IMG/VR virus record: IMGVR_UViG_3300046542_000248 | Span: 124,001-188,000 of that record | DNA: 64,000 nt | Strand: one strand, 5' to 3' | In this document: positions 887 to 62,374 of the stretch, piece after piece | Position numbering within the stretch: position 1 is the first letter of the stretch | How the letters are laid out: every line of letters begins with the position of its first letter | The notes under the pieces: model-generated | What the model was told of the DNA's origin: nothing | Databases searched by the model: none | What the model saw: the letters and a program-made list of their open reading frames with translations, nothing else | Made by a program: the position numbers and the translations under genes

Positions 887-890
887 GTGG

Positions 891-902
891 ATATATATTA
901 TT
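891..902 (+). promoter_or_regulatory. Early-type phage promoter motif ATATATATTATT
   Basis: Intergenic motif recurring about 16 times in the window, upstream of the RBS and start at 940. Confidence 0.75.
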
Positions 903-939
903 ATAATGAGCGTTACAATAAAATAATAAGAAAGGGAGG

Positions 940-1710
940 TTGAATAATATAATCTCTATAAATAAATCTACTAGATATGGTAGCTTAGACTACTTTACAT
1001 TGAACTGCGTTGATGAGACTTTACAAATTTTAAAAGATGAGCTGATGGATCGGCTCGCGGTAACTATTTTACCAGTTAAAAAAGCTAGGTTTTTACAACA
1101 TTCTGGTGGAGCTTCCCATGATATAAATATCTTTGATAAAAATTATGATGGAACACGACCACCAAAGCTTAAAGAAGTTATTGCGGAGATAACTCTCTGT
1201 AATGATATTGAATCACTGATAGGAAAGAAGACTTGTACTAACAATTTTGAAAAACGATTCTTTGAGTTCATAGAATCACTAGGGGTTGAGATTAATGTAT
1301 ACTCAATATTCACAATATCCCTTCTTCATGAACTTGGACACTCCAACCTGATAAAACTATTCCTAGACCTCGGTATGGAAAAGGAATATGATAACCTATA
1401 TCATTTGGCTAAAGCCACTGTAATGGCAACTGGCTCTTATAAGCAAAATGAATTATGGGAAAAGACACATAAAATATCTCTAGGACAAACGGCAGACGTT
1501 CAAGAGAATTTTGCAGATGCATATGCTTTAAAGAACTTTCCAAGAGTTTGGAATGTTGTGAAGCATTATATACGCCCAGAATTAAAGAATAAAAGTACCA
1601 CGGCCATAGTTCGATACAACCAGAGATTTAATCTGGAAGATCGAAAGTATGTAAAGGTTGTGGGAGAAGATCGTGGTATGAGCAATCTATTCAAGGAGAT
1701 ATTCGGATGA
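940..1710 (+). CDS. HExxH zinc-metallopeptidase-like protein (ImmA/IrrE-like), paralog 1
   Basis: LLHELGH plus downstream ENFADAYA; GGGAGG RBS; TTG start. Confidence 0.6.
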   Translation: MNNIISINKSTRYGSLDYFTLNCVDETLQILKDELMDRLAVTILPVKKARFLQHSGGASHDINIFDKNYDGTRPPKLKEVIAEITLCNDIESLIGKKTCTNNFEKRFFEFIESLGVEINVYSIFTISLLHELGHSNLIKLFLDLGMEKEYDNLYHLAKATVMATGSYKQNELWEKTHKISLGQTADVQENFADAYALKNFPRVWNVVKHYIRPELKNKSTTAIVRYNQRFNLEDRKYVKVVGEDRGMSNLFKEIFG

Positions 1711-2339
1711 TAAGTATAACAACCGAAAATATCAAATCAAGATACCAATTCTTTAGAACTGTTTGTATTGAGGAAACCCTTAAGTATTTAAAGGATAAAC
1801 TTCCTCATGAAACTAATGTTAATATTATCGCAGTATCTGATTACAATCACTTTATGGTAGAATCCACAGGTGGTGCTTTGTGTGATGCAAGATATAACAA
1901 AGATGTGTTAATATGTGACATCTTCATCTCTGATAATATTTATGGCTTTAATCAAATTTTCTACCCTGGAGAAACAGATAGAAGGGAAACCTTCTTAACA
2001 TCTCTTGATGTACCTATTGATAAGTGCTCATTATTCTTAATAGTACTACTGCATGAACTTGGGCATGCAAACTTAATAAAATTATTTCACGACGCTGGAA
2101 TTATTGATGATTATAGTATATTCGATTCGCTATCTGAATCTGTATCAAAGTTATTTGAAAGACGAAGAGCAACTCTTCAAAAGTGGGAAGATCGTTACAA
2201 TAGTAATAATCTCTCCCAGATTGTAAACGGCATCGAATCTCAATGTGATATCTTTGCCAGAGATAATTTTCTTCCACTATGGAAGATTATTAGTAAGATT
2301 TTAAAGAACTATACTATTGACCCAAATAAACTCGACTAA
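1707..2339 (+). CDS. HExxH zinc-metallopeptidase-like protein, paralog 2
   Basis: LLHELGHANLIKLF, ESQCDIFA; aligns with 940..1710; ATGA overlap. Confidence 0.6.
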   Translation: MISITTENIKSRYQFFRTVCIEETLKYLKDKLPHETNVNIIAVSDYNHFMVESTGGALCDARYNKDVLICDIFISDNIYGFNQIFYPGETDRRETFLTSLDVPIDKCSLFLIVLLHELGHANLIKLFHDAGIIDDYSIFDSLSESVSKLFERRRATLQKWEDRYNSNNLSQIVNGIESQCDIFARDNFLPLWKIISKILKNYTIDPNKLD

Positions 2340-2357
2340 GAGAAAAGAGGATTATAT

Positions 2358-2852
2358 ATGATCAGAATTAATGCACAATTACGTAAACCGATTGAAACTT
2401 CGTTCCATAAAGATTGTCAGAACGAGGTTAGAAAACAATTTTATTATTACATGCCTAAAGATACTGCAAAGGGTTATGTTAACGATGTTCACAGCATCTC
2501 TGTAAGACTTATTGATATTAACGAAGAACTTCGAGGACTATTCTGTAAATTCCTTACACATATCCAAGAAGAAATTACTGATCAATCTTTATATGTATTA
2601 TCCATGCTTCAAAAGGTTGGAGAAGATAAAATCCGAGAATCTCTTGGGTATAATAATTCTCTATGCTCCAGCATGAAGAAAATGACTCTAGCTGATTTGG
2701 GTGGAAACAATACTGTCTATAGCAGCGGCGTTGCTGAAACAATGTTCAAAGAAAGTCTCGGACTATCTATTTATGTAGCTCAAGCTCTCATATTTGCATT
2801 CAATGCTTTCAAATCTATTTGGGGAAGTGTTAAACATACTCCAGCGACCTAA
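2358..2852 (+). CDS. Degenerate paralog of the two upstream metallopeptidase-like proteins
   Basis: SLYVLSMLQKVGE aligns to SLFLIVLLHELGH; ALIFAFNAFKSIW aligns to CDIFARDNFLPLW. Confidence 0.5.
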   Translation: MIRINAQLRKPIETSFHKDCQNEVRKQFYYYMPKDTAKGYVNDVHSISVRLIDINEELRGLFCKFLTHIQEEITDQSLYVLSMLQKVGEDKIRESLGYNNSLCSSMKKMTLADLGGNNTVYSSGVAETMFKESLGLSIYVAQALIFAFNAFKSIWGSVKHTPAT

Positions 2853-3087
2853 TCACATTTCTGTTGGAATTTACGCAAGTGGAAACTTCGTAATTAATAT
2901 TGTACACCCTGATGATCTGGCTTATCATATTGAATACAATAAATCAAGGCGCCCTGGTCGTGCCTTGATCGTTGATGGAGAAAGTCTTAATAATGGATAT
3001 CTAAAGGATGATGCGATAGAAGAATGGAAAACTAAAATCGCAGCCATGGATATAAATTCTGCTAGACCTACAATCCCATATCAGTAG
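2794..3087 (+). CDS. Hypothetical protein (true start probably downstream of 2794)
   Basis: ORF with phage-like composition filling the gap before an intergenic region. Confidence 0.6.
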   Translation: MHSMLSNLFGEVLNILQRPNHISVGIYASGNFVINIVHPDDLAYHIEYNKSRRPGRALIVDGESLNNGYLKDDAIEEWKTKIAAMDINSARPTIPYQ

Positions 3088-3187
3088 CTTATACAAAATT
3101 AAATACGTTGTATAACTCTAGTATGGAGAGAAAAGTTCATTCACCTTAAGGAAAAGGTAATCCCAGTGGGACCCGAGTACGAAAAGG

Positions 3188-3200
3188 AATATATATTATT
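3188..3200 (+). promoter_or_regulatory. Early-type promoter motif
   Basis: AATATATATTATT. Confidence 0.75.
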
Positions 3201-3260
3201 ATAGTGTGAATGACAATGTATTAATCAATCTAATTCAAATTCTGAAGGGAGTTTTCGAAG

Positions 3261-3734
3261 ATGTCGAATCTGAAAAAACAATTGAAAAAGCTGCAACAGC
3301 AACAAAAGAAATTAAACGAGGTTATCCGGTTGGAGCAAGCTACTTGCCCACATATCGGTAAAAACGGAAAAACTAAACTTGTACCGTTTGTAGAAGATGA
3401 AGTAAGAAAAGGCCGTTGCAAAAAGTGCGGAGAAGTTGTTATTCTTGATTCCGAGTACCTGACACAAGATATTCTGTCCTCTTCTGCGGATGTTATTAAA
3501 ACCGCGCTTGCTGAAGTTCGTGCTGCTGTTCACGTTGGTAAAATCAAACTGGACGATGAAACAATGCGCATGATCTCCACATTTGACGCGGAAGTTCTGC
3601 GTGAGCTTCCGTCCACTATCGCTGATATTACGAGAGCGGGAAGCAAGAAAGACAAGAAAAAGAAAGACAAAGGTAAAGGCAAGAAAGGTAAGAAGAGCAA
3701 GAAGAAAAACAACAAACGCGAGCGCTGGAACTAG
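3261..3734 (+). CDS. Putative Zn-ribbon protein with Lys-rich C-terminal tail
   Basis: CPH...CKKC ligands; KKDKKKKDKGKGKKGKKSKKK tail; own promoter and terminator. Confidence 0.65.
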   Translation: MSNLKKQLKKLQQQQKKLNEVIRLEQATCPHIGKNGKTKLVPFVEDEVRKGRCKKCGEVVILDSEYLTQDILSSSADVIKTALAEVRAAVHVGKIKLDDETMRMISTFDAEVLRELPSTIADITRAGSKKDKKKKDKGKGKKGKKSKKKNNKRERWN

Positions 3735-3762
3735 TCAGCCGCTGCAACCGATAAGGCGGATG

Positions 3763-3797
3763 GGGAGAAATCTCCATCTGCCTTTTATATTTTTTTG
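3763..3797 (+). terminator. Intrinsic terminator (GAAA loop)
   Basis: AAGGCGGATGGGGA-GAAA-TCTCCATCTGCCTT followed by a T tract. Confidence 0.85.
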
Positions 3798-3858: not shown

Positions 3859-6288
3859 TTGACTAAGTATGAGAGGACTGGTAGAAACGTGACAATACGT
3901 ATTCTATGGTATATGAGAAAAGACAAGAATGTCTTCGATTATACTGATGACAAGATTACTGTAAACTACGACGATAGATCCCGAGTTCGTCAATCACCTC
4001 AAGTGTATTTACCAAGTACTGATCTTGATGGTGCAATTCATTTATTCGAAGAAGCATTTGCAAATGACATTGATGAAGTACTAGCGCCGGATTCTTGTGG
4101 GTCTGAAATCATTATTACTTTTGATGAGAAGACTAGTGTGTTTACAATGCAAGACGATGGTCGTGGATTACCTCATGGTAAATTCTTCGATCTGTTAGAA
4201 GTTCTAAGTTCCTCAGGTAAAATGGGAACTACAAACCGTGCCTACAACCATTCAACTGGTGCATTCGGTATGGGTTTCAAATTGATTAACTTCTTCTCGG
4301 TATATATGAAAGTAAGATCCGAGAGAGATGGTAAGTTCATTGATGCATTATATGAAGATGGACTCCGTAAAGAAGTTAAAGAAGGTAAGACAAAATCAAG
4401 TGGTACTTATGTAGAGTGGAAAGTCGATAAACGATTCTTCACCAGCGTAGCTATCACTATTGATCATATCTTAGATAAGATCAAGAAGAAAAGTTTAGTT
4501 GCTGGTGGTTGTACTATCATCTTTAGTGGTAAATCCAAAAAAGGTGAAGAAGTCACTAAAACGTTTAAGAATGGCAAACTTAAAGATCATCTTGCCTCGT
4601 TCAAGGTAGTTCAACCTATCGCTGAATATAAGAGACAGGATGGTAACTCTAAGATTGAATTTGTATTTGGTTATGATCTTGAAACCGATGAGGGTCAAGA
4701 AGTAATTGGCTTTACTAACGGTTCTTACAATAAGATTGGTGGCTCTCATGTTAACGGCTTGATTGAAGGATTTTCTACCTTCATGAGAAAGTATATGATG
4801 GAGTCCTACCTATCTGATAAGGAAAAGAAAGACCTTACGGAAAAAGATAAGAAAGAAATGAGAATTCTTATTGATGACGTTAAAGCAGGTTTAGTAGGGA
4901 TTGTATCAATCTACGCCCTTAATCCTAGCTACAAAGGTCAATATAAAGAAGGACTTGATGATAACAATCTCAAGAACTTCACATTTAACTCTGTTAGAAA
5001 ATATCTGAGAGATCTTGATAAGAACACTATTAACAAGTTTGCTCAGATTATCAAAGCTAACATTAGAGCGCGTGTTGCTGCTGAAAACAGCAAGAAGCGT
5101 ATCAGAAAAGATATTACAAATGCATTTTCACCGGATAAAATCAATGAGTATTTACCAATCTCTAAATTTTCAACGAGTAAGTTTAGAGAGATGTGTATCG
5201 TAGAAGGACTTTCTGCTCGTGGTGGCTTTAAAGCTGTTCGTGATAAGAACCAAATGGCAGTACTTGCAATCAGAGGTAAAGTTGAGAATATCTTTGACCT
5301 TACGCCTGCTGAAGCTGCAAAGCCTGCTAATTCTAAGCTAGTGTCCAATCTCGTTCAGATTTATGAAATCGAAAATGAAAATATCAAGAATTTTGACATT
5401 GAAAAATTCCCATTCGATCGAGTTAATATCGTAACAGATGCTGACTCTGATGGTGGAGAAATCTCTTGTCAATTGGCAATGATCTATGCTAGATTCTTCC
5501 CAGCTATTGTAACATCGGGAAGATTGTTTAAGATTATACCACCTCTTTATGAAGTAAAGGTAAAAGGCGAATCGGTCTTTATCTCTACTGTGCGTGATTA
5601 TGCTAAGTATACTCAAACTAGCTTTATGAAAGCACATAAACTTTTCTTGAATAATAAGGAAATCAAATCCGAAGATCTATTGGACTTCTTGGTTGAGTTC
5701 CATACTTATCAAGATAACTTGCAATACCTATCCAATCAGTACTTGCTAACTCCAGAACTAACTGAGTTCCTGATTAGTAATCTACATGTAGGATTCGAAA
5801 ATCATAAAATTGAAATTTGGAATACCAATATCCTTCCGACTAAATATCGGTTCCTTAAAGCAAGACCAGGCGATAATGGTTATCTGGAAATTGAAGGTAT
5901 GGTTGGTTCCGAATATAATTTGTTCGAATTCACTGATGAATTCATTGAAGATACGGTAGAGCGTTATAAGATTAACCCTGAGGCGCATTTCTATGGATAT
6001 ACCATTGATGGTAAACAGATGAGTTTGTATGAAGTAATGCAAACTGTATCCAAGTATGCTCCTAAAATTGTTACACGTTTTAAAGGATTAGGTGAGATGA
6101 GATCTGCCGATCTTGAAAGAACTATCGTTGACAAATCAGCTCGTCACAGTATTCGATTGACTATGAAGGATATCGAAGATACTTATGAGCGTATGGCAGT
6201 AATGCATTCCAAGAAAAAAGATTATCCGAACAAACGCAAGATCTATATGCGTAACTTCAAGTTCGATATCATGGATGTCGATACTTAA
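3859..6288 (+). CDS. gyrB: Type IIA topoisomerase, GyrB/ParE-like subunit (start may be GTG 3889)
   Basis: GHKL motifs (EEAFANDIDE, DDGRGLP, GAFGMG); TOPRIM motifs EGLSA, IRGK, TDADSDG; RFKGLGEM. Confidence 0.93.
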   Translation: MTKYERTGRNVTIRILWYMRKDKNVFDYTDDKITVNYDDRSRVRQSPQVYLPSTDLDGAIHLFEEAFANDIDEVLAPDSCGSEIIITFDEKTSVFTMQDDGRGLPHGKFFDLLEVLSSSGKMGTTNRAYNHSTGAFGMGFKLINFFSVYMKVRSERDGKFIDALYEDGLRKEVKEGKTKSSGTYVEWKVDKRFFTSVAITIDHILDKIKKKSLVAGGCTIIFSGKSKKGEEVTKTFKNGKLKDHLASFKVVQPIAEYKRQDGNSKIEFVFGYDLETDEGQEVIGFTNGSYNKIGGSHVNGLIEGFSTFMRKYMMESYLSDKEKKDLTEKDKKEMRILIDDVKAGLVGIVSIYALNPSYKGQYKEGLDDNNLKNFTFNSVRKYLRDLDKNTINKFAQIIKANIRARVAAENSKKRIRKDITNAFSPDKINEYLPISKFSTSKFREMCIVEGLSARGGFKAVRDKNQMAVLAIRGKVENIFDLTPAEAAKPANSKLVSNLVQIYEIENENIKNFDIEKFPFDRVNIVTDADSDGGEISCQLAMIYARFFPAIVTSGRLFKIIPPLYEVKVKGESVFISTVRDYAKYTQTSFMKAHKLFLNNKEIKSEDLLDFLVEFHTYQDNLQYLSNQYLLTPELTEFLISNLHVGFENHKIEIWNTNILPTKYRFLKARPGDNGYLEIEGMVGSEYNLFEFTDEFIEDTVERYKINPEAHFYGYTIDGKQMSLYEVMQTVSKYAPKIVTRFKGLGEMRSADLERTIVDKSARHSIRLTMKDIEDTYERMAVMHSKKKDYPNKRKIYMRNFKFDIMDVDT

Positions 6289-13489: not shown

Positions 13490-14674
13490 ATGTCTAACGA
13501 ATCCGCAAAACTACTCGGGCAAGAACTGAAAGAAAATATGAGCAAAATCCAAGGTAAAAATGAAGCATTACAAATGAAAATGAAAGCAAGTATTTTTGGC
13601 GTTGGTGCTGGCGGCGGTAATATCGCACATCTTATGAGCTATTTCGATGGCTATGATACAGCAGCTTTAAATACAACACAATCCGACATGGTTGGTTTGA
13701 TGGTTGATCATAGAGTGGTAATTAAAGGTGTTAATGGATCTGGTAAAGATCGTGCATTTGCATCTGATCAATTCAAACTTTCCTATAAATCATTCTTTGA
13801 ACATGACGGAATTAAGAAGCTTATCGAGAACGATTTAATTTTCGTTGTCGGTACAGGTGGTGGTGGAACTGGTACAATCATTTCCATTATGACCGCCGCT
13901 TATCTTAAGAAAGAATATCCAAATAAACAAATCTTCTTTATTGGCATGCTAGGTTCAATTAAAGAAGATAAAACATCGCAGGAAAATATGCGTGAGTTTA
14001 TGTCTGATCTTGAAAATAAACTCAGCGTTCCGTATCTTCTATTCGATAACAATCGTACGAAGAATATGGTTGGCGATCAAGTTTACGATAAAGTTAATAA
14101 CGATATCGTTGACGCAATTCGTGTTCTATCTAAAGATTTCTTCGTTGAGACATCACGGAGTAATATTGACGGTCGAGACTATGCTCGCTTAGCAAGCTAT
14201 GCTGGTTTAACATCCGTAATCAATATTCCCAATCTGAACATCAGCGTGTCGGAAGAAACAATCGACCTTACTGGTCGTATTCAGCAAGCTATTGAAGGTA
14301 GTACAAATATCATCACGGAATCTCCTGAAGCATATGGCTTCTTCATGAATGTTGATGAGGAAGTATATTCGGCTGTGGATACTACATTCCATGATGTTCA
14401 AGAAAAGATTGCTGGAAAACCTTCAAGTGGTCTAGCATTCAAACATCTTCAAAATGCAACAGGACAAGGGCCAGAATTTGCAATGATTGCAACTGGTCTA
14501 TCAGCTCCAATGCAACGCTTTAAAATGATTGATCGTCGTATTTCCGAGCTTGAACAAGTTAAAGAAAAAGAAAAGCTGCCTACAGTTGAAAGAAATTCAT
14601 CCAAACTGCAACTTGCAGGGGATGGAAACTCTAATGGGACTGGGCAAGGTTCTAATGCCTTTGACGGATTCTAA
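13490..14674 (+). CDS. FtsZ/tubulin-family GTPase (PhuZ/TubZ-like)
   Basis: GVGAGGGNIA, ALNT, GSGKD, signature GGGGTGT, FDNN, T7 loop NIDGRD. Confidence 0.9.
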   Translation: MSNESAKLLGQELKENMSKIQGKNEALQMKMKASIFGVGAGGGNIAHLMSYFDGYDTAALNTTQSDMVGLMVDHRVVIKGVNGSGKDRAFASDQFKLSYKSFFEHDGIKKLIENDLIFVVGTGGGGTGTIISIMTAAYLKKEYPNKQIFFIGMLGSIKEDKTSQENMREFMSDLENKLSVPYLLFDNNRTKNMVGDQVYDKVNNDIVDAIRVLSKDFFVETSRSNIDGRDYARLASYAGLTSVINIPNLNISVSEETIDLTGRIQQAIEGSTNIITESPEAYGFFMNVDEEVYSAVDTTFHDVQEKIAGKPSSGLAFKHLQNATGQGPEFAMIATGLSAPMQRFKMIDRRISELEQVKEKEKLPTVERNSSKLQLAGDGNSNGTGQGSNAFDGF

Positions 14675-18857: not shown

Positions 18858-20936
18858 ATGCTTCAACCAGATCAAATTGAAGAACTTGACCGTATTGCTA
18901 GTGACATTAAAAATATTGACCATGCTTTAGGGAGTGGATTACTTATTCCACTTGGAAATAAAGTAAACTCTTCACGGGCTGCATTAGTATTTCAACAAAC
19001 AGGTCAGTCTAAAAATCTTGTTGAACCTGAGATTGCAAGAGTATCTACTGGATATGAGAAAGTATTCGGAGATAGATCAACTTCTTTCCATAAGACTGAG
19101 AAAGAATTTGAAGTCGTTAACAAGATTCAAAAGTTTGGTAATGACTTTGTATATGCCTTAGTCCTTAGAGAAAAAGGTACAAATTATTATGATCTTGTAC
19201 TTAGAAACGAAGTAGAATCCTTTGCTGAATCTTCCGGCGTAAAGATCAATAACACGGTTATTGACTCTATGAATATCGGAGATAAGATTAGAGAAGGTGA
19301 GATTCTACACAAATCTAATTCCTATGATGAGAATATGAATTATCGTCTAGGAATTAATGCTAAGACAATTTATATGACTGATCCTGCAATTGTAGAAGAT
19401 GGGTTTAGAACGTCTGTCCCTCTTGCATATCGTCTACGTTCCACTGATGTTATACCGTATAAAGTTCCTAAGAATACAAATGATATCTTCTTGAATCTAT
19501 ATGGGAATAGTGAAGTATACAAAACGTTCCCAGATATTGGTGAGAAGGTAAAGAATAAGGTTCTATGTGGAAAGCGCAGAATTGATTATAATAATGCACA
19601 GTATATGCTTAAGAGTAAGAATCTCCGTAAAGAGATGTTTGGTGATACTCTTACGTATACTGATGGTACTGTAGTTGATATTGATATCTACTCTAATGTA
19701 CCTATTGATGATGTTCCTACCGATCGGGTAAACGAACAGACTCTTAAGTACATGAAAATGATTAGCAAATATTGGCATGAACTAAGAAAAGTTCTTGGTC
19801 GTATTGTCGATAATCCTGAGAATGAATATTCAGACCAAGTTGGTATTACTTATGCTCGGGCTAAAGATGTCTTGAGTATTGGTAAGACTACTAAGTGGGA
19901 TGATGATGGTTCTATCTTTGATAATATGATCATGTATTTTACAGTGGTCAATACTAAGAAAGCTGTTATCGGTACGAAACTTGTAGGACGCCATGGTAAT
20001 AAAGGCGTAATCTCCGAAATTGTTGAAGAGAAGTATATGCCACGAAGTGAAGATGGTGAATATGCTGAAATCATCTTTAGTGCTCTTTCAGTTATTGGTC
20101 GTCTGAATCCTTCACAGCTATATGAGCTTGAGCTTAACTGGATTGTGGATGAGATTCTTAATGGTAATGTCTCGCAGAAGAAGAAGTTCGATACACTGCT
20201 TGACTTCCTATCCATCTGTAACCCAAATCAAGAAAAAGTAGTGCGTGAACTATATGATTCTCTTGATAAAGCTGAAAAAGAAGTATTTATGAGTCAACTT
20301 ACAACTGAGTTCGTTACATTCCAACCGCCTAGTATGTCGATTAGCTTTGACAACTATGCTAAACTGGTTGAGAAGGTTGAACCTAAGAAGAAACGCTTTA
20401 CAGTTATGGATGAAAAAGGACAAGTCTTTAACATCCAAAACAAACTGATTATGTCTGATTCATATATCTACAAACTGAAACATGAACCGATTACAAAGTT
20501 CTCTGTACGTTCTAAAGGTACTATTAATCCACGTACATTCCTTCCGATTAAATCGCATGCATATAGCAGAGGAACAGCTCTGTTTAATAACCAAGCGATT
20601 CGGATTGGTAATATGGAAATGGATATCCTCAATCTGTGTAACGATCCTGCGGCTATTAACTACTTTACACGATTGTATTGTACATCCGTAATTGGTCGTC
20701 GTGAATTTGCACAGCTACTTGATACAAACATCTTCCAAGATGAAATGGAAATCGAGATGAACAACTCAACTTCTCGTGTAGTAGATCTATTCAACTCTAC
20801 TTTCATGGTATGTGGTATGGGACTACGTTTCGAATATCCAGATAAGAAAGTAAATGACATCTTCCTTGAAGAGATTAAGAACATGGAAAGCAAACATGTA
20901 AAAGTTGTCTTTGCCGGATGGGATAAGTTTAAATAA
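18858..20936 (+). CDS. RNA polymerase beta C-terminal half, probable non-virion RNAP subunit
   Basis: NSSRA, EDG, GTKLVGRHGNKGVIS, MP, GRLNPSQLYE, YIYKLKH, RIGNME. Confidence 0.93.
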   Translation: MLQPDQIEELDRIASDIKNIDHALGSGLLIPLGNKVNSSRAALVFQQTGQSKNLVEPEIARVSTGYEKVFGDRSTSFHKTEKEFEVVNKIQKFGNDFVYALVLREKGTNYYDLVLRNEVESFAESSGVKINNTVIDSMNIGDKIREGEILHKSNSYDENMNYRLGINAKTIYMTDPAIVEDGFRTSVPLAYRLRSTDVIPYKVPKNTNDIFLNLYGNSEVYKTFPDIGEKVKNKVLCGKRRIDYNNAQYMLKSKNLRKEMFGDTLTYTDGTVVDIDIYSNVPIDDVPTDRVNEQTLKYMKMISKYWHELRKVLGRIVDNPENEYSDQVGITYARAKDVLSIGKTTKWDDDGSIFDNMIMYFTVVNTKKAVIGTKLVGRHGNKGVISEIVEEKYMPRSEDGEYAEIIFSALSVIGRLNPSQLYELELNWIVDEILNGNVSQKKKFDTLLDFLSICNPNQEKVVRELYDSLDKAEKEVFMSQLTTEFVTFQPPSMSISFDNYAKLVEKVEPKKKRFTVMDEKGQVFNIQNKLIMSDSYIYKLKHEPITKFSVRSKGTINPRTFLPIKSHAYSRGTALFNNQAIRIGNMEMDILNLCNDPAAINYFTRLYCTSVIGRREFAQLLDTNIFQDEMEIEMNNSTSRVVDLFNSTFMVCGMGLRFEYPDKKVNDIFLEEIKNMESKHVKVVFAGWDKFK

Positions 20937-32637: not shown

Positions 32638-34281
32638 ATGGCTAATCGCGACTTTCTTGAATTGTCCATGGGTATGACTACTGCTTCCGATCCTGCGGTT
32701 TCGAACTTCTATGCGAAACTGTTTGAATCTCATGGTGGTAATGTTTCTGGTGACTTGGCTAGTATTTTCAAAAGCAAAGAATCCGCACAATCTTTCTTGG
32801 AATCCGTAAACGAGGTTTTGGCTGAAAGCACTTACGAAGGTCAAGGTCTTGCGAATTCCATCTTGCGTGAAGATGCTGCAGCTCGTGCAGTGTCCATGCA
32901 AAACGTAGTAAACGAGATGCTTACTGAAGCAACTCAACAAGGCCTATCGGCTCTTAAACCGATCTCCTTGACATCTTTCGGGTTCCAAATCCGTTCGTAT
33001 GTTAAAGCAGTTATGCATCGTGCAGTTAAAACGATTCAAGCTGAGCGTCCAAGTTTCAAAATCACTGAGCGTAAGCAATACGTGATCGACATTGCTGGTA
33101 ACAAACATTATTTCACTGATGCATTCAACCGTAACTCGGATTTGGTGAACAACCTTCATCAAAAATTCGATTTCACAGTTACTGCACCAACAACGGCTTA
33201 TGATATCTTCACATCCGGTTCGATCGACAAGCGTAACAAGCTTGGAATCGACGTAGTTCTAAAATCTTTCACTGGTGTTAAAACCGATGGTACGACTGCT
33301 GAAGTTGCTGGCGATTTGAAAATCGTTGGACGCAACCGTCAGATCGACATCGAAACTGGTCGTTTCAGCGTTGATGTAACAATCGGACCTGAATTGACTA
33401 AAGCTACAATCATGGGCGAGATCGACTTCGAAGCTGCTGTTCTTACAAGCATCTCCGCAACTTCTTCCCGTGTTAAAACAGTAACTTTCGGTGCTCGTTT
33501 GTCTTCCGAAACTCATTTGAAAGCACTTCAAACTGGTTTCGAACACAAACACACAAACGTTGCTATTCCAGACGGCGCACACATCGAAGTGAACCCATCC
33601 GTTGAGTTCCTTGATGATGTAACTCGTATGACTGGTATCAACGTACTTGAAGAGTACACAAATCAAATGGGTCAATTGGTTGAGCAGTTGGAAGACCGCA
33701 CAATCTATGAGGCTCTTAAGGATCTTGAATCCCAAGCAATCCTTGCAAAAACTTTCAATGTAACTCCGGATGCGAGCTTCTCCCTTGGTCGTGAAGAATG
33801 GCTTCGTCGTGAGTTCCACCCGTTCATTGAGCGTATTTGTATCCGTCTTAAAGCTGAACTTCAGCTTGATGATTGCCACTTCCGTGTAGTTGGTAACCCG
33901 ATTGATATTCGTGTACCAAATGCATCCGGCGAGCAATACATCTTCCGTCGTAACCAGGATATGACTGGTGCTTCGCAAATCAACTATGATTTCGCGGTAA
34001 TGAGCACTGGTAACACTGTGTTCTACCTGTCTACAGATCGTGTAGCACCAGGTAAAATCTATGTTAACCTTATCCCTAACAGCATTCAAAACAACATCAT
34101 CACAGTTAACCACTACCGTTATGCTAACTATGTTAGCAACAAATACCGTAGCTCGGTTAACCCAGCCCTTCCGGCTATCATGGTGTCCAGCCGCTACCAA
34201 ACTAAGGAATACAATCCTGTTATGGCGGTTATCACTATGGACAATAACTACAGCGACTTCTACACTGGCAGATACGCATAA
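32638..34281 (+). CDS. Major capsid protein precursor
   Basis: 547 aa, strong codon bias, perfect AAGGAGG RBS, LxE-rich propeptide, UUCG terminator, position near the protease; possible late promoter variant AACA TAAAAT CG at 32564. Confidence 0.8.
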   Translation: MANRDFLELSMGMTTASDPAVSNFYAKLFESHGGNVSGDLASIFKSKESAQSFLESVNEVLAESTYEGQGLANSILREDAAARAVSMQNVVNEMLTEATQQGLSALKPISLTSFGFQIRSYVKAVMHRAVKTIQAERPSFKITERKQYVIDIAGNKHYFTDAFNRNSDLVNNLHQKFDFTVTAPTTAYDIFTSGSIDKRNKLGIDVVLKSFTGVKTDGTTAEVAGDLKIVGRNRQIDIETGRFSVDVTIGPELTKATIMGEIDFEAAVLTSISATSSRVKTVTFGARLSSETHLKALQTGFEHKHTNVAIPDGAHIEVNPSVEFLDDVTRMTGINVLEEYTNQMGQLVEQLEDRTIYEALKDLESQAILAKTFNVTPDASFSLGREEWLRREFHPFIERICIRLKAELQLDDCHFRVVGNPIDIRVPNASGEQYIFRRNQDMTGASQINYDFAVMSTGNTVFYLSTDRVAPGKIYVNLIPNSIQNNIITVNHYRYANYVSNKYRSSVNPALPAIMVSSRYQTKEYNPVMAVITMDNNYSDFYTGRYA

Positions 34282-37268: not shown

Positions 37269-39431
37269 ATGTCACTCAAAAGACCCTATCGAAAGTCTGA
37301 AGAAGAATACCATATACATTGGGAAACGACTAATACGTCATTCCTTAAAGTAGCATTACTATTAAAGAATGCTGGTGTTGAGAACTATCACTTTATGCTT
37401 AGACTTTATGATGATGATCTAATGCATATTGACCCATATGATCCAGATATTAGTCCTGAGGATATGGGTAAAGTTTTACAGGAAGTTGCAATTAATTTTT
37501 TCTATTTTATACGTGAAGTTGCAAGGATTCCTGAAGAAGGAAGTAGTACTGAGGTTGGTGGTGGTACACCGTTTATGCTTCATCGGGGCAATCTGGCTCA
37601 GATGTGGGCTTTCGAACATAACATATCTCACTTCTTGGAGCTACCGAGACAGTTCGGGAAGACAACAGGGGCTGTACAGAGATATTTATGGCAATTCTCT
37701 TATGGCACCACATCTTCTACTACTATCTTTATGAATATGGATAAAGCGGCATCTGTTGCCAACTTAACTCGTTTGAAAGATAGTCGATCATTATTACCTG
37801 AGTATATGCAAATGGTATTTACTTTAGATGACAAAGGTCAACTGAAGAAAGATACTGATAACGTAAATGAAATCAAGAATAAGAAATTAAAGAATAATAT
37901 CATCACTAAAGCTGGTGCTCGTAACGTTCAGTCTGCCGAGAGGGTTGGTCGGGGTCTTTCTGTTCCTGCACTATGGTTCGATGAGTTTAACTTTATCCTT
38001 CTTAATGAAACAATCCATGCCGCTGCTATCCCAGCATTTTCTAAGGCTTCTGAAAATGCTCAGAAAAATGATAAACCATTTGCCATCTGTATCACTAGTA
38101 CACCTGGTGATCTTGGTACAGCACATGGTGCATATGGATATGATCTTAAAGAAAAAGCAGGTCGTTTCAATGAAAATCTGTATGATCTAGATCCGGACGA
38201 AGTAGAAACATGGTTACGTAAGAACTCAAGTAACGGAATGCTGTACATCTCCTTCTCATTCTATCAATTAGGTAAGACAATGGAATGGTTTGAAGAACAA
38301 TGTAGACGTATGAATCATAACTGGATGAAAATCCGTCGGGAACTTCTTCTACAATGGAATAAAGCTTCTCAAAACTCTCCTTTCCTTCCTGAAGATATTG
38401 ATGAACTTGATACAATGGCAGTTCCATATTTCAAAACTATTAGAATCAATAAATACTATGATGTACTACTCTACAAAGAACTTGATCCTTACAGACGCTA
38501 TATTATAGGTGTGGACGTTTCGAAGGGTGTGGGTCGAGATTCGACAGCAGTTGCTATCGTAGATTCCCAAACCTTAGAAGTATGTGGTCTATTTATTAAT
38601 AATACTATTAGGTCAAAAGAACTCAAACGATTCTTAATGAGTTTAGTTCTCGATCATCTTCCTAACTCAGTACTAGTCATAGAGAGTAATAATATTGGTG
38701 ATGCAATTATTGAGGATTTAAAAGCTTCTCCTCTTAAACATCACTTATACTACGACTTCGTTACTCGTCTTGCTGAAGATAGACGTAAAGATGGTCAAGT
38801 ACAAAAACAACCTAAAACTCGTATGATCTATGGTCATGAAGTAACTTCTGCTACTCGTCCTAAGATGATGGATCTATTACTTCAATTCGTTTCCAAACAC
38901 AAGAAGAAAATTGCTGTTAGGGAATTAGTTGATCAAATCCGTCACTTGGAGTATAAGAATGAAGAAAGAATTGACCATGCTGCTGGACATCATGATGATG
39001 CCGTCTTTGCGTACTTAGCGTGCATATACATCATGTTCTATGGTAAGAATCTTCCGAGATTCGGTCTATATAATGCTTTCAACTTTGAAGGTGGTGAGAT
39101 CGAAGATAGAGATCCACCTGAAGATAAAGTTGCTAAAGTATTTAAGAAAGCCAAGCTTCAACGACTCATTAAATCCAATCCTTATCTTGCTGGACTCTTC
39201 GAAGATCTTATATTCATCGACGATGTTAATAAAGCAATTGATAGAGAGATGTATGATCTTGAAGCTAGTGATGATGATAAAGGAAGTTTATTTACTTCCG
39301 ATGGAATGGCAGGTTCGAAAATCAAGAAGAATGCATTCAGAGAACTAAATGCTAGATCATCCAATCGTATAAACGGTAGTGCTGGTTCTGTATTTGGTCT
39401 AGGTGATAGATACTCTGGAAGCTCTTGGTAA
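37269..39431 (+). CDS. terL: Terminase large subunit
   Basis: Walker A PRQFGKT, GRG, Walker B WFDE, TSTPG, nuclease motifs IGVDVSKGVGRDST, VIESN, HDD. Confidence 0.92.
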   Translation: MSLKRPYRKSEEEYHIHWETTNTSFLKVALLLKNAGVENYHFMLRLYDDDLMHIDPYDPDISPEDMGKVLQEVAINFFYFIREVARIPEEGSSTEVGGGTPFMLHRGNLAQMWAFEHNISHFLELPRQFGKTTGAVQRYLWQFSYGTTSSTTIFMNMDKAASVANLTRLKDSRSLLPEYMQMVFTLDDKGQLKKDTDNVNEIKNKKLKNNIITKAGARNVQSAERVGRGLSVPALWFDEFNFILLNETIHAAAIPAFSKASENAQKNDKPFAICITSTPGDLGTAHGAYGYDLKEKAGRFNENLYDLDPDEVETWLRKNSSNGMLYISFSFYQLGKTMEWFEEQCRRMNHNWMKIRRELLLQWNKASQNSPFLPEDIDELDTMAVPYFKTIRINKYYDVLLYKELDPYRRYIIGVDVSKGVGRDSTAVAIVDSQTLEVCGLFINNTIRSKELKRFLMSLVLDHLPNSVLVIESNNIGDAIIEDLKASPLKHHLYYDFVTRLAEDRRKDGQVQKQPKTRMIYGHEVTSATRPKMMDLLLQFVSKHKKKIAVRELVDQIRHLEYKNEERIDHAAGHHDDAVFAYLACIYIMFYGKNLPRFGLYNAFNFEGGEIEDRDPPEDKVAKVFKKAKLQRLIKSNPYLAGLFEDLIFIDDVNKAIDREMYDLEASDDDKGSLFTSDGMAGSKIKKNAFRELNARSSNRINGSAGSVFGLGDRYSGSSW

Positions 39432-49219: not shown

Positions 49220-51337
49220 ATGGGAAACAAAAAAGAGAAAAAAGCTAGACTTAAATTGAAAAAGAAAATGAAAGAGGTAGCTAAGACCCGCTACGCTATG
49301 GGTAATTGGAAACATAGTTTGAATGAAATTGTGGCACAGCTACAAGAAGAAGGGGAATTCACATCTACTGGGGATAGAAATCGAATCTATCCTACAATTA
49401 ATGAATTCGGTACTATTGATTCATATGATTCATATATTGAAGCACTAATCACTGGCACTAAACGCCTATTGTCTGATGGTAAGGATGAACTAGCCAAACT
49501 GACAATGGCATTCAAGTTTAATTCGGATGACGAATTTGAAGAGATGAACTATGTACGTTTCCTCTTCAATATTATCATGTGGCGTCCGTTTATCGTATCT
49601 AACATTGCTGTGACTAAGAAAGATATCTTCAATGCTGAAGTATTCCACAATAAGAAATATGAGGAGTATTTCAATAACTTTGCAGATAGATTTAGAGATA
49701 GATTTACAATGCAAGAATACTCTGAGATTCTATTCGATATTCAAGTGTATATGAATAAGATCGCAGTTGAACTTGGTCCGTTATTCGGTAACTCCATCTC
49801 TATCTATGACATGGTAAAGATGGCAAAACGTAATAACGAAATCAATGCTTTAATGAATACGGAAGTAGATCTTGAAAACTTCCAAGTCAGTCAAGTAGAG
49901 GAATTCCTCATCAAACAGACTGATCGCTTCTTCCAAATCTTGATGAATGAATCGGATAAGAATAATCCTCTTAAACCATTCATTCGTGCAGGTGTAGGTG
50001 TAAACAAACGTCAAGTTCAAGAGATCTTCTTGCACTTGGGCTTTAAACCGGATTTATCAGGTTCCACTATGCCATTAACTAGTAACAGTAACTTTACTAC
50101 TTATGGCTTGAAAGATCCAAGAGCATTGTATGTGGATGCTCAAGGTGCTCGTAAAGCCGCTATCATGCAGCTCGCAGTTAGTGAGTCAGGCTATTACGGT
50201 CGCCATCAAAGTTTCGTAACTTCGAATGTCGTACTACATGAAGATCCATCGTATTCTTGCAATACGAAGAATCTGTTGAATATCAAGATCGAATCTGCAT
50301 TGGATCTTGAACTATTTGATGGACGGTTCTACAAAACTGGTGAGAAGCGTTACAAGATTCTTACACAGAAAGACACAAATCTAATTGGTGAAACTCTGGA
50401 GTTCAGAACACCACAAACTTGTGCGAATAAAGATAGTCATATCTGTAAAGTCTGCTACGGTACAATGTATAACGTAAACTACGGAATGCATGCAGGACTG
50501 TTTGCAGCAATTGATTCAAATGAAAATAAAACTCAGCGACAGCTATCTGCACGACATGCATTAGCTACAATGAGTGCCACCATTAACTTGATCGACGAGA
50601 AGATGTTCCTAATCAATCAAAATGGCTGGCTGTTTAGTCTTAATAATGATATTGATAGAAGTAAGTATTCTATCGTATTCAATGCTTCGGATGTATTCAT
50701 GGATAACCCTGAAAACTACGAGCAATATGATAATTACTACGTTAATAAACTGACGTTCAAGAATAACAAAACCGAAGAACATTTCGAAGTGTATGAGGAG
50801 CAAAATACTCATATGTATTTGAGTAAGCAACTGTACAGCACTCTTAGAGATAAGAGATTCTTCGGGTTAGATAACGATGAATCTATCTCAATCCAATTAA
50901 AGAACTTCAGCATTGATGAGCCATTCACATTCTTACGGATCTCAAATGCTGAACTTGCTAAACCGCTAAAAGAGTTGGCTGGATTCATTCAAAAAGGTAA
51001 GAAACAACTTGAAGATGTTTTCGATTACCATGAATTCACTGATAAACTGAATAAACTTTATAGATATGGGGGTATGGCAATCCCATCCGTCCATATTGAA
51101 ATGCTTCTGAGAAATCTTATTAGAAGAACTGATGATGAGTTAAAGATTCCTGATTGGGAAGTAGAACAAACTCCTGATATGTATAAGATGGTTTCACTCA
51201 ATGATTCCATCATCCTATCAAACTCTGTAACTCTTGGATTGATGTTCGAGAAAGTTCGTCGTCAACTTAAAATGCCAAGAACTTATAGAAAACGTGGAAG
51301 TTCGATCTATAGCGTACTGTTCATTAACGAGCAATAA
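49220..51337 (+). CDS. RNA polymerase beta' C-terminal half, probable non-virion RNAP subunit
   Basis: Bridge helix GARKAA.....SESGYYGR, Zn site RTPQTC...ICKVCYG, trigger loop TQRQLSARH, HIEMLLRN. Confidence 0.9.
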   Translation: MGNKKEKKARLKLKKKMKEVAKTRYAMGNWKHSLNEIVAQLQEEGEFTSTGDRNRIYPTINEFGTIDSYDSYIEALITGTKRLLSDGKDELAKLTMAFKFNSDDEFEEMNYVRFLFNIIMWRPFIVSNIAVTKKDIFNAEVFHNKKYEEYFNNFADRFRDRFTMQEYSEILFDIQVYMNKIAVELGPLFGNSISIYDMVKMAKRNNEINALMNTEVDLENFQVSQVEEFLIKQTDRFFQILMNESDKNNPLKPFIRAGVGVNKRQVQEIFLHLGFKPDLSGSTMPLTSNSNFTTYGLKDPRALYVDAQGARKAAIMQLAVSESGYYGRHQSFVTSNVVLHEDPSYSCNTKNLLNIKIESALDLELFDGRFYKTGEKRYKILTQKDTNLIGETLEFRTPQTCANKDSHICKVCYGTMYNVNYGMHAGLFAAIDSNENKTQRQLSARHALATMSATINLIDEKMFLINQNGWLFSLNNDIDRSKYSIVFNASDVFMDNPENYEQYDNYYVNKLTFKNNKTEEHFEVYEEQNTHMYLSKQLYSTLRDKRFFGLDNDESISIQLKNFSIDEPFTFLRISNAELAKPLKELAGFIQKGKKQLEDVFDYHEFTDKLNKLYRYGGMAIPSVHIEMLLRNLIRRTDDELKIPDWEVEQTPDMYKMVSLNDSIILSNSVTLGLMFEKVRRQLKMPRTYRKRGSSIYSVLFINEQ

Positions 51338-61368: not shown

Positions 61369-61433
61369 CCGCAAGTAGTAGCGTATATAGGTATATATTA
61401 TTGATGAGTATAAGATAGAAATATAATCTATCT
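61369..61433 (+). repeat. Repeated early-promoter cassette, copy 1
   Basis: CCGCAAGTAGT-N12-TATATATTATT-N5-GTATAAGATAGAAATATAATCTATCT. Confidence 0.85.
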
Positions 61434-61473
61434 CATAACTCTGCTAAACATATGAAGGAGAGCTGCTAATCTT

Positions 61474-62272: not shown

Positions 62273-62337
62273 CCGCAAGTAGTGGGCTTCACAGCTATAT
62301 ATTATTATTGGGTATAAGATAGAAATATAATCTATCT
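62273..62337 (+). repeat. Repeated early-promoter cassette, copy 2
   Basis: Same three blocks and same spacing as 61369-61433. Confidence 0.85.
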
Positions 62338-62374
62338 TAACTATAAACTAACTAGCCTTAAGGAGGCAAACAAA

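Follow-up and report, generated by a model that had tools for sequence, protein, structure and literature searches.

Two zincin-like paralogs with intact active sites and one degenerate paralog in a predicted early cassette of a distantly AR9-like jumbo phage

Jumbo phages recurrently encode small zincin-like peptidases, whose copy number varies and whose functions are unexplored. SprT-like metallopeptidases are present in 1–3 copies in some of these phages and have been read as targeting host proteins (Iyer et al. 2021, PMC7824862). Peptidase_M78 proteins (ImmA/IrrE/PprI, COG2856), common on phages and mobile elements, consist of a small cytoplasmic zincin domain in which HExxH is followed by a Glu ligand within an E-x-x-A-[DN]-x-F-A-like motif. 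M34-type gluzincins (anthrax lethal factor catalytic domain, PPEP-1/2/3) are also among the closest known systems. Here, a tight cassette of three genes (P1, P2 and P3) was analyzed that fills positions 940–2852 of a 64,000-nucleotide (nt) stretch of viral DNA (hereafter the window; bases 124001–188000 of the 246,901-bp IMG/VR virus record IMGVR_UViG_3300046542_000248, rated 100% complete). The cassette resembles Peptidase_M78 in domain size and motif pair, and the SprT-like peptidases in being made of small zincin-like genes whose copy number varies between close relatives. Unlike Peptidase_M78, P1 is modelled with an N-terminal sheet of four strands and with two additional helices between the motifs; unlike the SprT-like peptidases, the family has no SprT-like Pfam match, and its predicted third ligand is Glu, not His.

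A similar setting is occupied by g013 of Bacillus phage AR9 (211 amino acids (aa); zincin-like, with a weak Peptidase_M78 match), which is driven by an early promoter of the same consensus, adjoins a RecD/Dda-like helicase gene and lies near gyrB. Unlike the triad, g013 is a single copy with a helix-turn-helix (HTH) neighbour (g014). Aligned to the P1/P2 family by hhalign, g013 covered 12 columns, corresponding to the HExxH helix alone, and a search of the AR9 genome with the family profile gave a weak HExxH match alone and no family member.

All three genes run in one direction (+ strand). P1 (256 aa, 940–1710) and P2 (210 aa, 1707–2339) are joined by an ATGA overlap, and P3 (164 aa, 2358–2852) starts 18 nt after P2 and has a Shine-Dalgarno sequence of its own. 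Where P1 starts is ambiguous: GGGAGG, the Shine-Dalgarno sequence, runs up to 939 and abuts TTG at 940, and the Met of a 66%-identical ortholog aligns with ATA at 949, so that a non-canonical start, possibly at 949, may be considered. The P1 ortholog in the related contig L010 was shortened by the gene caller (195 aa), with the full-length frame open upstream. The analysis upholds the description of the cassette as early and as made up of two live zincins and a dead paralog. A probability of about 0.6 was assigned to the reading that P1 and P2 are soluble zinc endopeptidases, expressed early and belonging to an unclassified gluzincin-like family, with P3 as a non-catalytic derivative. What is new is the rare family and the unusual triad; small phage zincin-like peptidases as such were already known.

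Active-site residues and predicted fold of P1 and P2

P1 and P2 are 29% identical by BLASTP (E 1e-17). An earlier note, made from the letters of the window, had assigned to both an LLHELGH motif and a later E-x-x-[AC]-D-x-[YF]-A, and the translations bear this out. P1 reads LLHELGH (H130 codon at 1327; HELGH at 1327–1341) followed by ENFADAYA (1504–1527; E189 codon at 1504), and P2 reads LLHELGH (H116 codon at 2052; HELGH at 2052–2066) followed by ESQCDIFA (2235–2258; E177 codon at 2235). The spacing from HExxH to the Glu is 55 residues in P1 and 57 in P2. In a 33-sequence family alignment H130, E131, H134 and E189 (P1 numbering) were invariant, and G133, D193, F200 and W204 were at least 90% conserved. 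In a joint alignment all active members (31/31) carried H-E-H-E at the four catalytic or ligand columns and mostly Asp at the fifth. Orthologs of P2 are 54–65% identical, and five IMG/VR contigs carry P2 orthologs. The two His of HExxH and the downstream Glu would bind the metal, with the Glu of HExxH as general base; P1 and P2 would thereby be soluble single-domain zinc metallohydrolases, most likely endopeptidases.

P1 was modelled with AlphaFold2 on the 33-sequence alignment (mean predicted local distance difference test (pLDDT) 84.8; predicted template modelling score (pTM) 0.86). The model comprises four N-terminal strands and a helix followed by a helical subdomain, with HExxH on helix 120–143 and E189 on helix 187–210. 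HExxH and a downstream Glu, both conserved and placed on two helices of the predicted model, are the hallmark of gluzincins. Foldseek of the model against PDB returned nothing at E<0.1, and searches of BFVD and the ESM Atlas returned weak, zincin-rich lists. The model was also aligned with VIA-align against 48,161 representative chains, repeated on the Foldseek top 1000. Almost all entries in these lists were zincins: YbeY (6.5–6.9), the anthrax lethal factor catalytic domain (6.0–6.4, 143–146 residues aligned), ERAP1 (5.8–6.2), lugdulysin (6.0), Wss1 (5.7), PPEP-1/2/3 (5.4–5.7), SPRTN (5.3–5.6), PprI/IrrE (5.2, rank 20) and BepA (5.0).

With YbeY at the head of the list, zincin-fold hydrolases acting on a non-protein substrate, for example a YbeY-like RNase on host or phage RNA, were considered. 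The metal site of YbeY is H-x3-H-x5-H. YbeY (UPF0054) identity was rejected on the absence of this site: P1 has Leu five residues after the second His, and the family keeps HExxH and a distant Glu. The Z differences between YbeY and the peptidase matches were below 1, with tied ranks. A non-protein substrate was rated the least probable of the readings weighed here.

Comparison with known zincin families and distribution

The earlier note had called the cassette ImmA/IrrE-like, taking HExxH plus ExxA(D/N)xFA as the defining pattern of ImmA/IrrE/CapP. Pfam PF06114 (Peptidase_M78) gave no match to P1–P3 at E≤1 or to the 33 family members at E≤0.1, and a six-frame M78 search of the whole 246.9-kb genome gave no match at E≤10, with control genomes that did match. 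Natural M78 (25) and M48 (27) domains were then gathered from Bacilli genomes with Pfam models and built into home-made profiles (not a full HHpred). The comparison with Peptidase_M78 that had been proposed along with the label aligned the HExxH helix alone (hhalign, 10 columns, 65%), as did the comparison with M48 (12 columns, 36%); as a control, M78 aligned with M48 over 86 columns (89%). HExxH and the ExxA[DN]-type motif were spaced by 20–34 residues in 16/18 M78 domains in which the simple pattern matched (59 and 61 in the other two) and 71–93 in 25/27 natural M48 sequences, where ExxAD is regular; an M56-like example has ELRAD at 37. Since M48 and M56 also show ExxAD, the motif pair is common to several zincin families and is not diagnostic of ImmA/IrrE/CapP. 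HExxH and ExxAD are thus insufficient for an ImmA/IrrE call.

Peptidase_M78 identity was rejected on the lack of a PF06114 match, the 10-column overlap, the spacing of 55 and the lack of an adjacent HTH gene. On the last point the earlier note was right: scans of P3, the small open reading frame (ORF) after it, the 157-aa neighbour and the helicase gave no HTH family match, and no HTH was found among the called neighbours in related contigs. Very divergent ImmA/IrrE/CapP-type proteins cleaving an HTH repressor or a similar regulator would share the small domain and the motif pair of this family. Against them stand these tests and the g013 alignment described above, and they are judged improbable. 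Peptidase_M48 identity was rejected on the lack of a PF01435 match, the 12-column overlap at 36% and a spacing of 55 against 71–93. In contrast to the M48/M56 peptidases (HtpX, BepA, Ste24, BlaR1), the triad proteins are not hydrophobic overall (grand average of hydropathy −0.2 to −0.3).

In SprT and Wss1 proteins the third ligand is a nearby His. SprT-like/WLM identity was rejected because no family member matched PF10263 or WLM at E≤0.1 and no conserved His follows just after HExxH. Wss1 and SPRTN do appear in the structural lists, and related DNA-protein crosslink proteases could support the replication fork of the phage, for instance by removing trapped topoisomerase II. Such a role is unlikely for P1 and P2: the invariant candidate for the third ligand is a Glu 55 residues on, scans revealed no DNA-binding domain appended to the proteins, the isoelectric point (pI) is acidic in P2 (5.3) and near neutral in P1 (7.8), and distant family members sit in other gene contexts, where the neighbours include genes for RNase H and dCTP deaminase.

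When 1.84 billion cluster representatives were searched exhaustively with P1 (phmmer), 27 clusters alone matched at E<1e-3, all of them single-domain proteins of 114–263 aa. No match was obtained by tblastn of P1 against 50,697 GenBank phage records, which argues at the level of sequence that the P1/P2 family is distinct from the jumbo-phage SprT-like peptidases, or by megablast of 6.3 kb. Scans of P1–P3 against PHROGs, NCBIfam and PADLOC were blank. Searches of PDB sequences, whether the query was a single protein or the family profile, hit the HExxH helix of an S2P protease alone (E 0.044), and the best Pfam hint was DUF4344 (putative metallopeptidase, E 0.055). None of these databases (Pfam, PHROGs, NCBIfam, PADLOC, PDB) models the family, which is, as judged from these searches, rare, unclassified and mostly phage-borne.

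Two Paenibacillus genomes carry one family copy each, apparently disrupted and in variable islands. In P. glacialis (L027 5777–6315) the gene is split into two ORFs without the HExxH part, and in P. alba (L028 5977–6497) a stop precedes the ExxAD motif. These copies hint at a Bacillota host range. The neighbours of distant members (L018, L020, L021) include no detectable P1- or P3-like paralogs, and for this reason the triplication is assigned, from gene content, to this phage clade specifically.

P3, a degenerate paralog

P3 reads MLQKVGE (residues 83–89) where P1 and P2 have LLHELGH. A single pairwise comparison of P3 with P1 was weak to marginal (E 1e-4). When the seven P3 orthologs were aligned as a profile with the 33 family members (hhalign), the match had a probability of 96.9% (E 1.8e-10) and placed QKVGE of P3 on HExGH and the C-terminal IFAxxxFxxxW on ADxFAxxNFxxxW; reciprocal hidden Markov model searches also linked P3 to the family. 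By MAFFT, the N-terminal 30 residues of P3 align with P1 and P2, and the middle, strand-forming segment is deleted. Every P3 ortholog (7/7) reads Q-[KR]-E-[VIAL]-[LIV] at the five key columns and retains F200 and W204; in P3 itself, V139 replaces the Glu ligand and L143 the Asp. The claim in the earlier note that the third ORF aligns with the other two and has lost its metal ligands is thereby confirmed, with all five key columns replaced. By these alignments, P3 is a true but degenerate paralog of the active family.

The seven P3 orthologs are confined to this phage clade and share 25 invariant columns at 30–63% identity. Conservation among them peaks in the former active-site helix, where LQ.VGEDK (LQ[KR]VGEDK, 2607–2633 in the window) is invariant and takes the place of LHExGH. 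P3 combines homology to an active family, loss of the catalytic residues and conservation of the gene. Because it is conserved across seven orthologs, and most strongly in the former active-site helix, its sequence identifies it as a pseudo-enzyme maintained over the long term and not a decaying gene. The AlphaFold2 model of P3 (pLDDT 84.2) is all-helical with no beta-sheet, and searching the ESM Atlas with P3 yielded no usable match. P3 would have come from the same family by losing part of the beta-sheet subdomain, the three metal ligands and the catalytic base. As the catalytic residues are lost and the gene is nevertheless under clear constraint, P3 would work non-catalytically, plausibly as a binding, adaptor or regulatory protein. 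It could be an instance, in a phage, of a pseudo-protease that has kept a function and, if it were an adaptor, inhibitor or decoy for P1 and P2, a phage counterpart of iRhom-type pseudo-protease regulation.

Promoter, genomic context and candidate targets

An AR9-type early (virion RNA polymerase) promoter-like motif lies 32 nt upstream of P1 (889–908, + strand), reading GGATATATATTAT followed by six bases and G at 908. The AR9 early promoter consensus, AAATATATATTAT-(6N)-G+1, was determined by dRNA-seq and primer extension (PMC5312081); the same work showed that AR9 early promoters do not depend on protein synthesis, which assigns them to the virion RNA polymerase that is injected. Positions 889–908 agree with this consensus at 11/13 bases plus the G. 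The core ATATATTAT has 15 copies in the window against 3.1 expected, a number reached in 0/100 shuffles. The copies lie at 893, 3191, 11428, 12652, 13409, 18417, 21003, 21697, 24372, 37170, 49156, 56991, 61393, 62297 and 62941; 14/15 are on the + strand (37170 being on the − strand), all 15 have G after six bases, and their flanking consensus is aAATATATATTAT-6N-G. The motif was also present upstream of the P1 ortholog in L003, L006, L008, L010 and L011, and directly upstream of the distant single-copy family members in L018 and L020.

Between the helicase gene upstream and the triad lies a terminator-like hairpin (844–876, + strand; CGTACCAGA...TCTGGTACGG, a 13-bp stem followed by a T-run), which is kept in relatives L006, L008 and L011. 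The next early promoter-like motif, at 3187–3206 (+ strand; GAATATATATTAT, six bases, G), marks the start of the following unit. With that motif as its limit, 889–3087 was delineated by analogy with AR9 as one predicted early transcription unit of P1, P2, P3 and a small ORF of at most 97 aa (2794–3087, + strand), the last of the unit, whose residues 20–97 match phrog_14040 (unknown function, E 3.5e-27). The earlier note had described the genes as an early operon; the promoter motif, found in relatives as well, lends this support, and the early timing stays an extrapolation from AR9.

The gene order is conserved. Every related contig carries a DnaB-like helicase gene, two small reverse genes, a small gene, a PIF1/Dda-like helicase gene and then P1, P2 and P3, followed by a few variable small genes and the GyrB-like and topoisomerase A genes. 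P1 and P3 occur together in every related contig examined. In L011/L012 (3456–3980) the P2 slot is taken by an unrelated 174-aa FapA/bactofilin-like repeat ORF, and L008/L009 carry an inserted gene of 107 aa (4663–4986) that separates P2 from P3. An ortholog of the phrog_14040 ORF follows P3 in L010; in other relatives a KTI12/AAA_33 kinase-like gene, absent from the window, lies downstream of P3.

P1 and P2 would act soon after infection, and probably on different substrates, since both are catalytically intact across related phages. Their substrates would be host proteins and less likely phage proteins: host targets are made the more plausible by the predicted early timing of the cassette, its variability among close relatives and its several copies. 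Variation in gene content between close relatives has been read as typical of conflict genes (Iyer et al., PMC7824862), and these authors reason likewise for SprT-like peptidases of other jumbo phages. P1 and P2 could instead process phage proteins (injected virion proteins, replication or transcription factors). Jumbo phages show extensive proteolytic maturation and encode conserved, uncharacterised zincin-like peptidases (PMC7824862), which fits such a role, and no data point to a host target. Against such a role, the cassette sits within the replication module, is preceded by an early-type promoter and is distant from the head genes, with the major capsid protein gene at 32638 and that for terminase at 37269. 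Its content also varies among close relatives, as in the replacement of P2 in L011/L012. Processing of phage proteins was accordingly given only a slim chance.

A more specific proposal is that P1 and P2 are early host-takeover proteases of an undescribed zincin family, each directed at a different host protein (for example a Paenibacillus/Bacillus defence or stress-response factor), and that P3 keeps the surface with which the old active-site helix bound a substrate or partner, and serves as an adaptor, inhibitor or decoy. This proposal is speculative and was rated at low probability.

Several points weigh against the broader reading of P1 and P2 as early zinc endopeptidases with P3 as their non-catalytic derivative. 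The shared metal site of H130, H134 and E189 is a prediction from helix positions in the model. YbeY, the top structural match, acts as an RNase, which makes a substrate other than a peptide conceivable. The early timing is argued from AR9, and the substrates of P1 and P2 and the partners of P1–P3 remain putative. A complex prediction for P1 and P3 gave a score of 0.01 and a mark of 0.32, which allows no verdict and is evidence neither way. With two conserved active paralogs, one conserved dead paralog and a recognisable early promoter, the cassette is a clean test case, and the substrates of P1 and P2 would reveal which cleavages are required of an AR9-like phage within minutes of infection.

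The upstream neighbour of the triad, in the window and in all related contigs, is a Dda/PIF1-like helicase gene, of which the C-terminal part is present here (2–841, + strand; phrog_325 Dda-like helicase, E 2e-43; Pfam UvrD_C_2). Downstream of the unit lies a conserved 157-aa gene (3261–3734, + strand) with its own early-type promoter, followed by a terminator hairpin (3753–3784). Its translation has a zinc-ribbon-like CxH...CxxC motif (CPH...CKKC) and a long Lys-rich, poly-Lys C-terminal tail (pI 9.96); orthologs were found in all relatives, with no family match, and by these sequence features the product could be a nucleic-acid-binding early protein.

The window also encodes split multisubunit RNA polymerase beta-like proteins, a tubulin/PhuZ-like protein, a UvsX-like recombinase, a NAD-dependent ligase and tail sheath, together with the head genes given above. 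The GyrB-like topoisomerase has its nearest cultured matches in Bacillus phages AR9, PBS1 and Goe21 (~25% identity). From these matches and the gene content of the window, the source is an uncultured, distantly AR9-like jumbo phage from a rhizosphere metagenome. GC content near the triad is 34–37%. Among public sequencing runs, phage sequence was found in two DNA runs, both rhizosphere metagenomes, one of which is the sole full DNA holder; no RNA run contained it. The tubulin/PhuZ-like gene (13490–14674; Pfam Tubulin E 9e-5, below the cut-off; phrog PhuZ E 8e-10) and the two split RNA polymerase beta-type genes (18858–20936 and 49220–51337) place it among the phiKZ/AR9-style jumbo phages that have RNA polymerases of their own, and its transcription scheme would resemble that of AR9/PBS1. 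By analogy with AR9, the promoter-like copies predict that the tubulin-like gene, the RNA polymerase beta-like genes (18858, 49220) and the ligase gene are also early.

Outside the window, a 423-aa ORF of the phage (G000:C1:8303-9574; L015 1099–2370) has an HExxH helix that weakly matches the triad-family profile (E 0.06) and no Pfam family; it is possibly another zincin-like protein. Within the window, at 61393–61440 and 62297–62345, two of the promoter-like copies are each followed by an identical 26-nt sequence, GTATAAGATAGAAATATAATCTATCT, which points to duplication of a promoter-leader unit or to a small element that is repeated.

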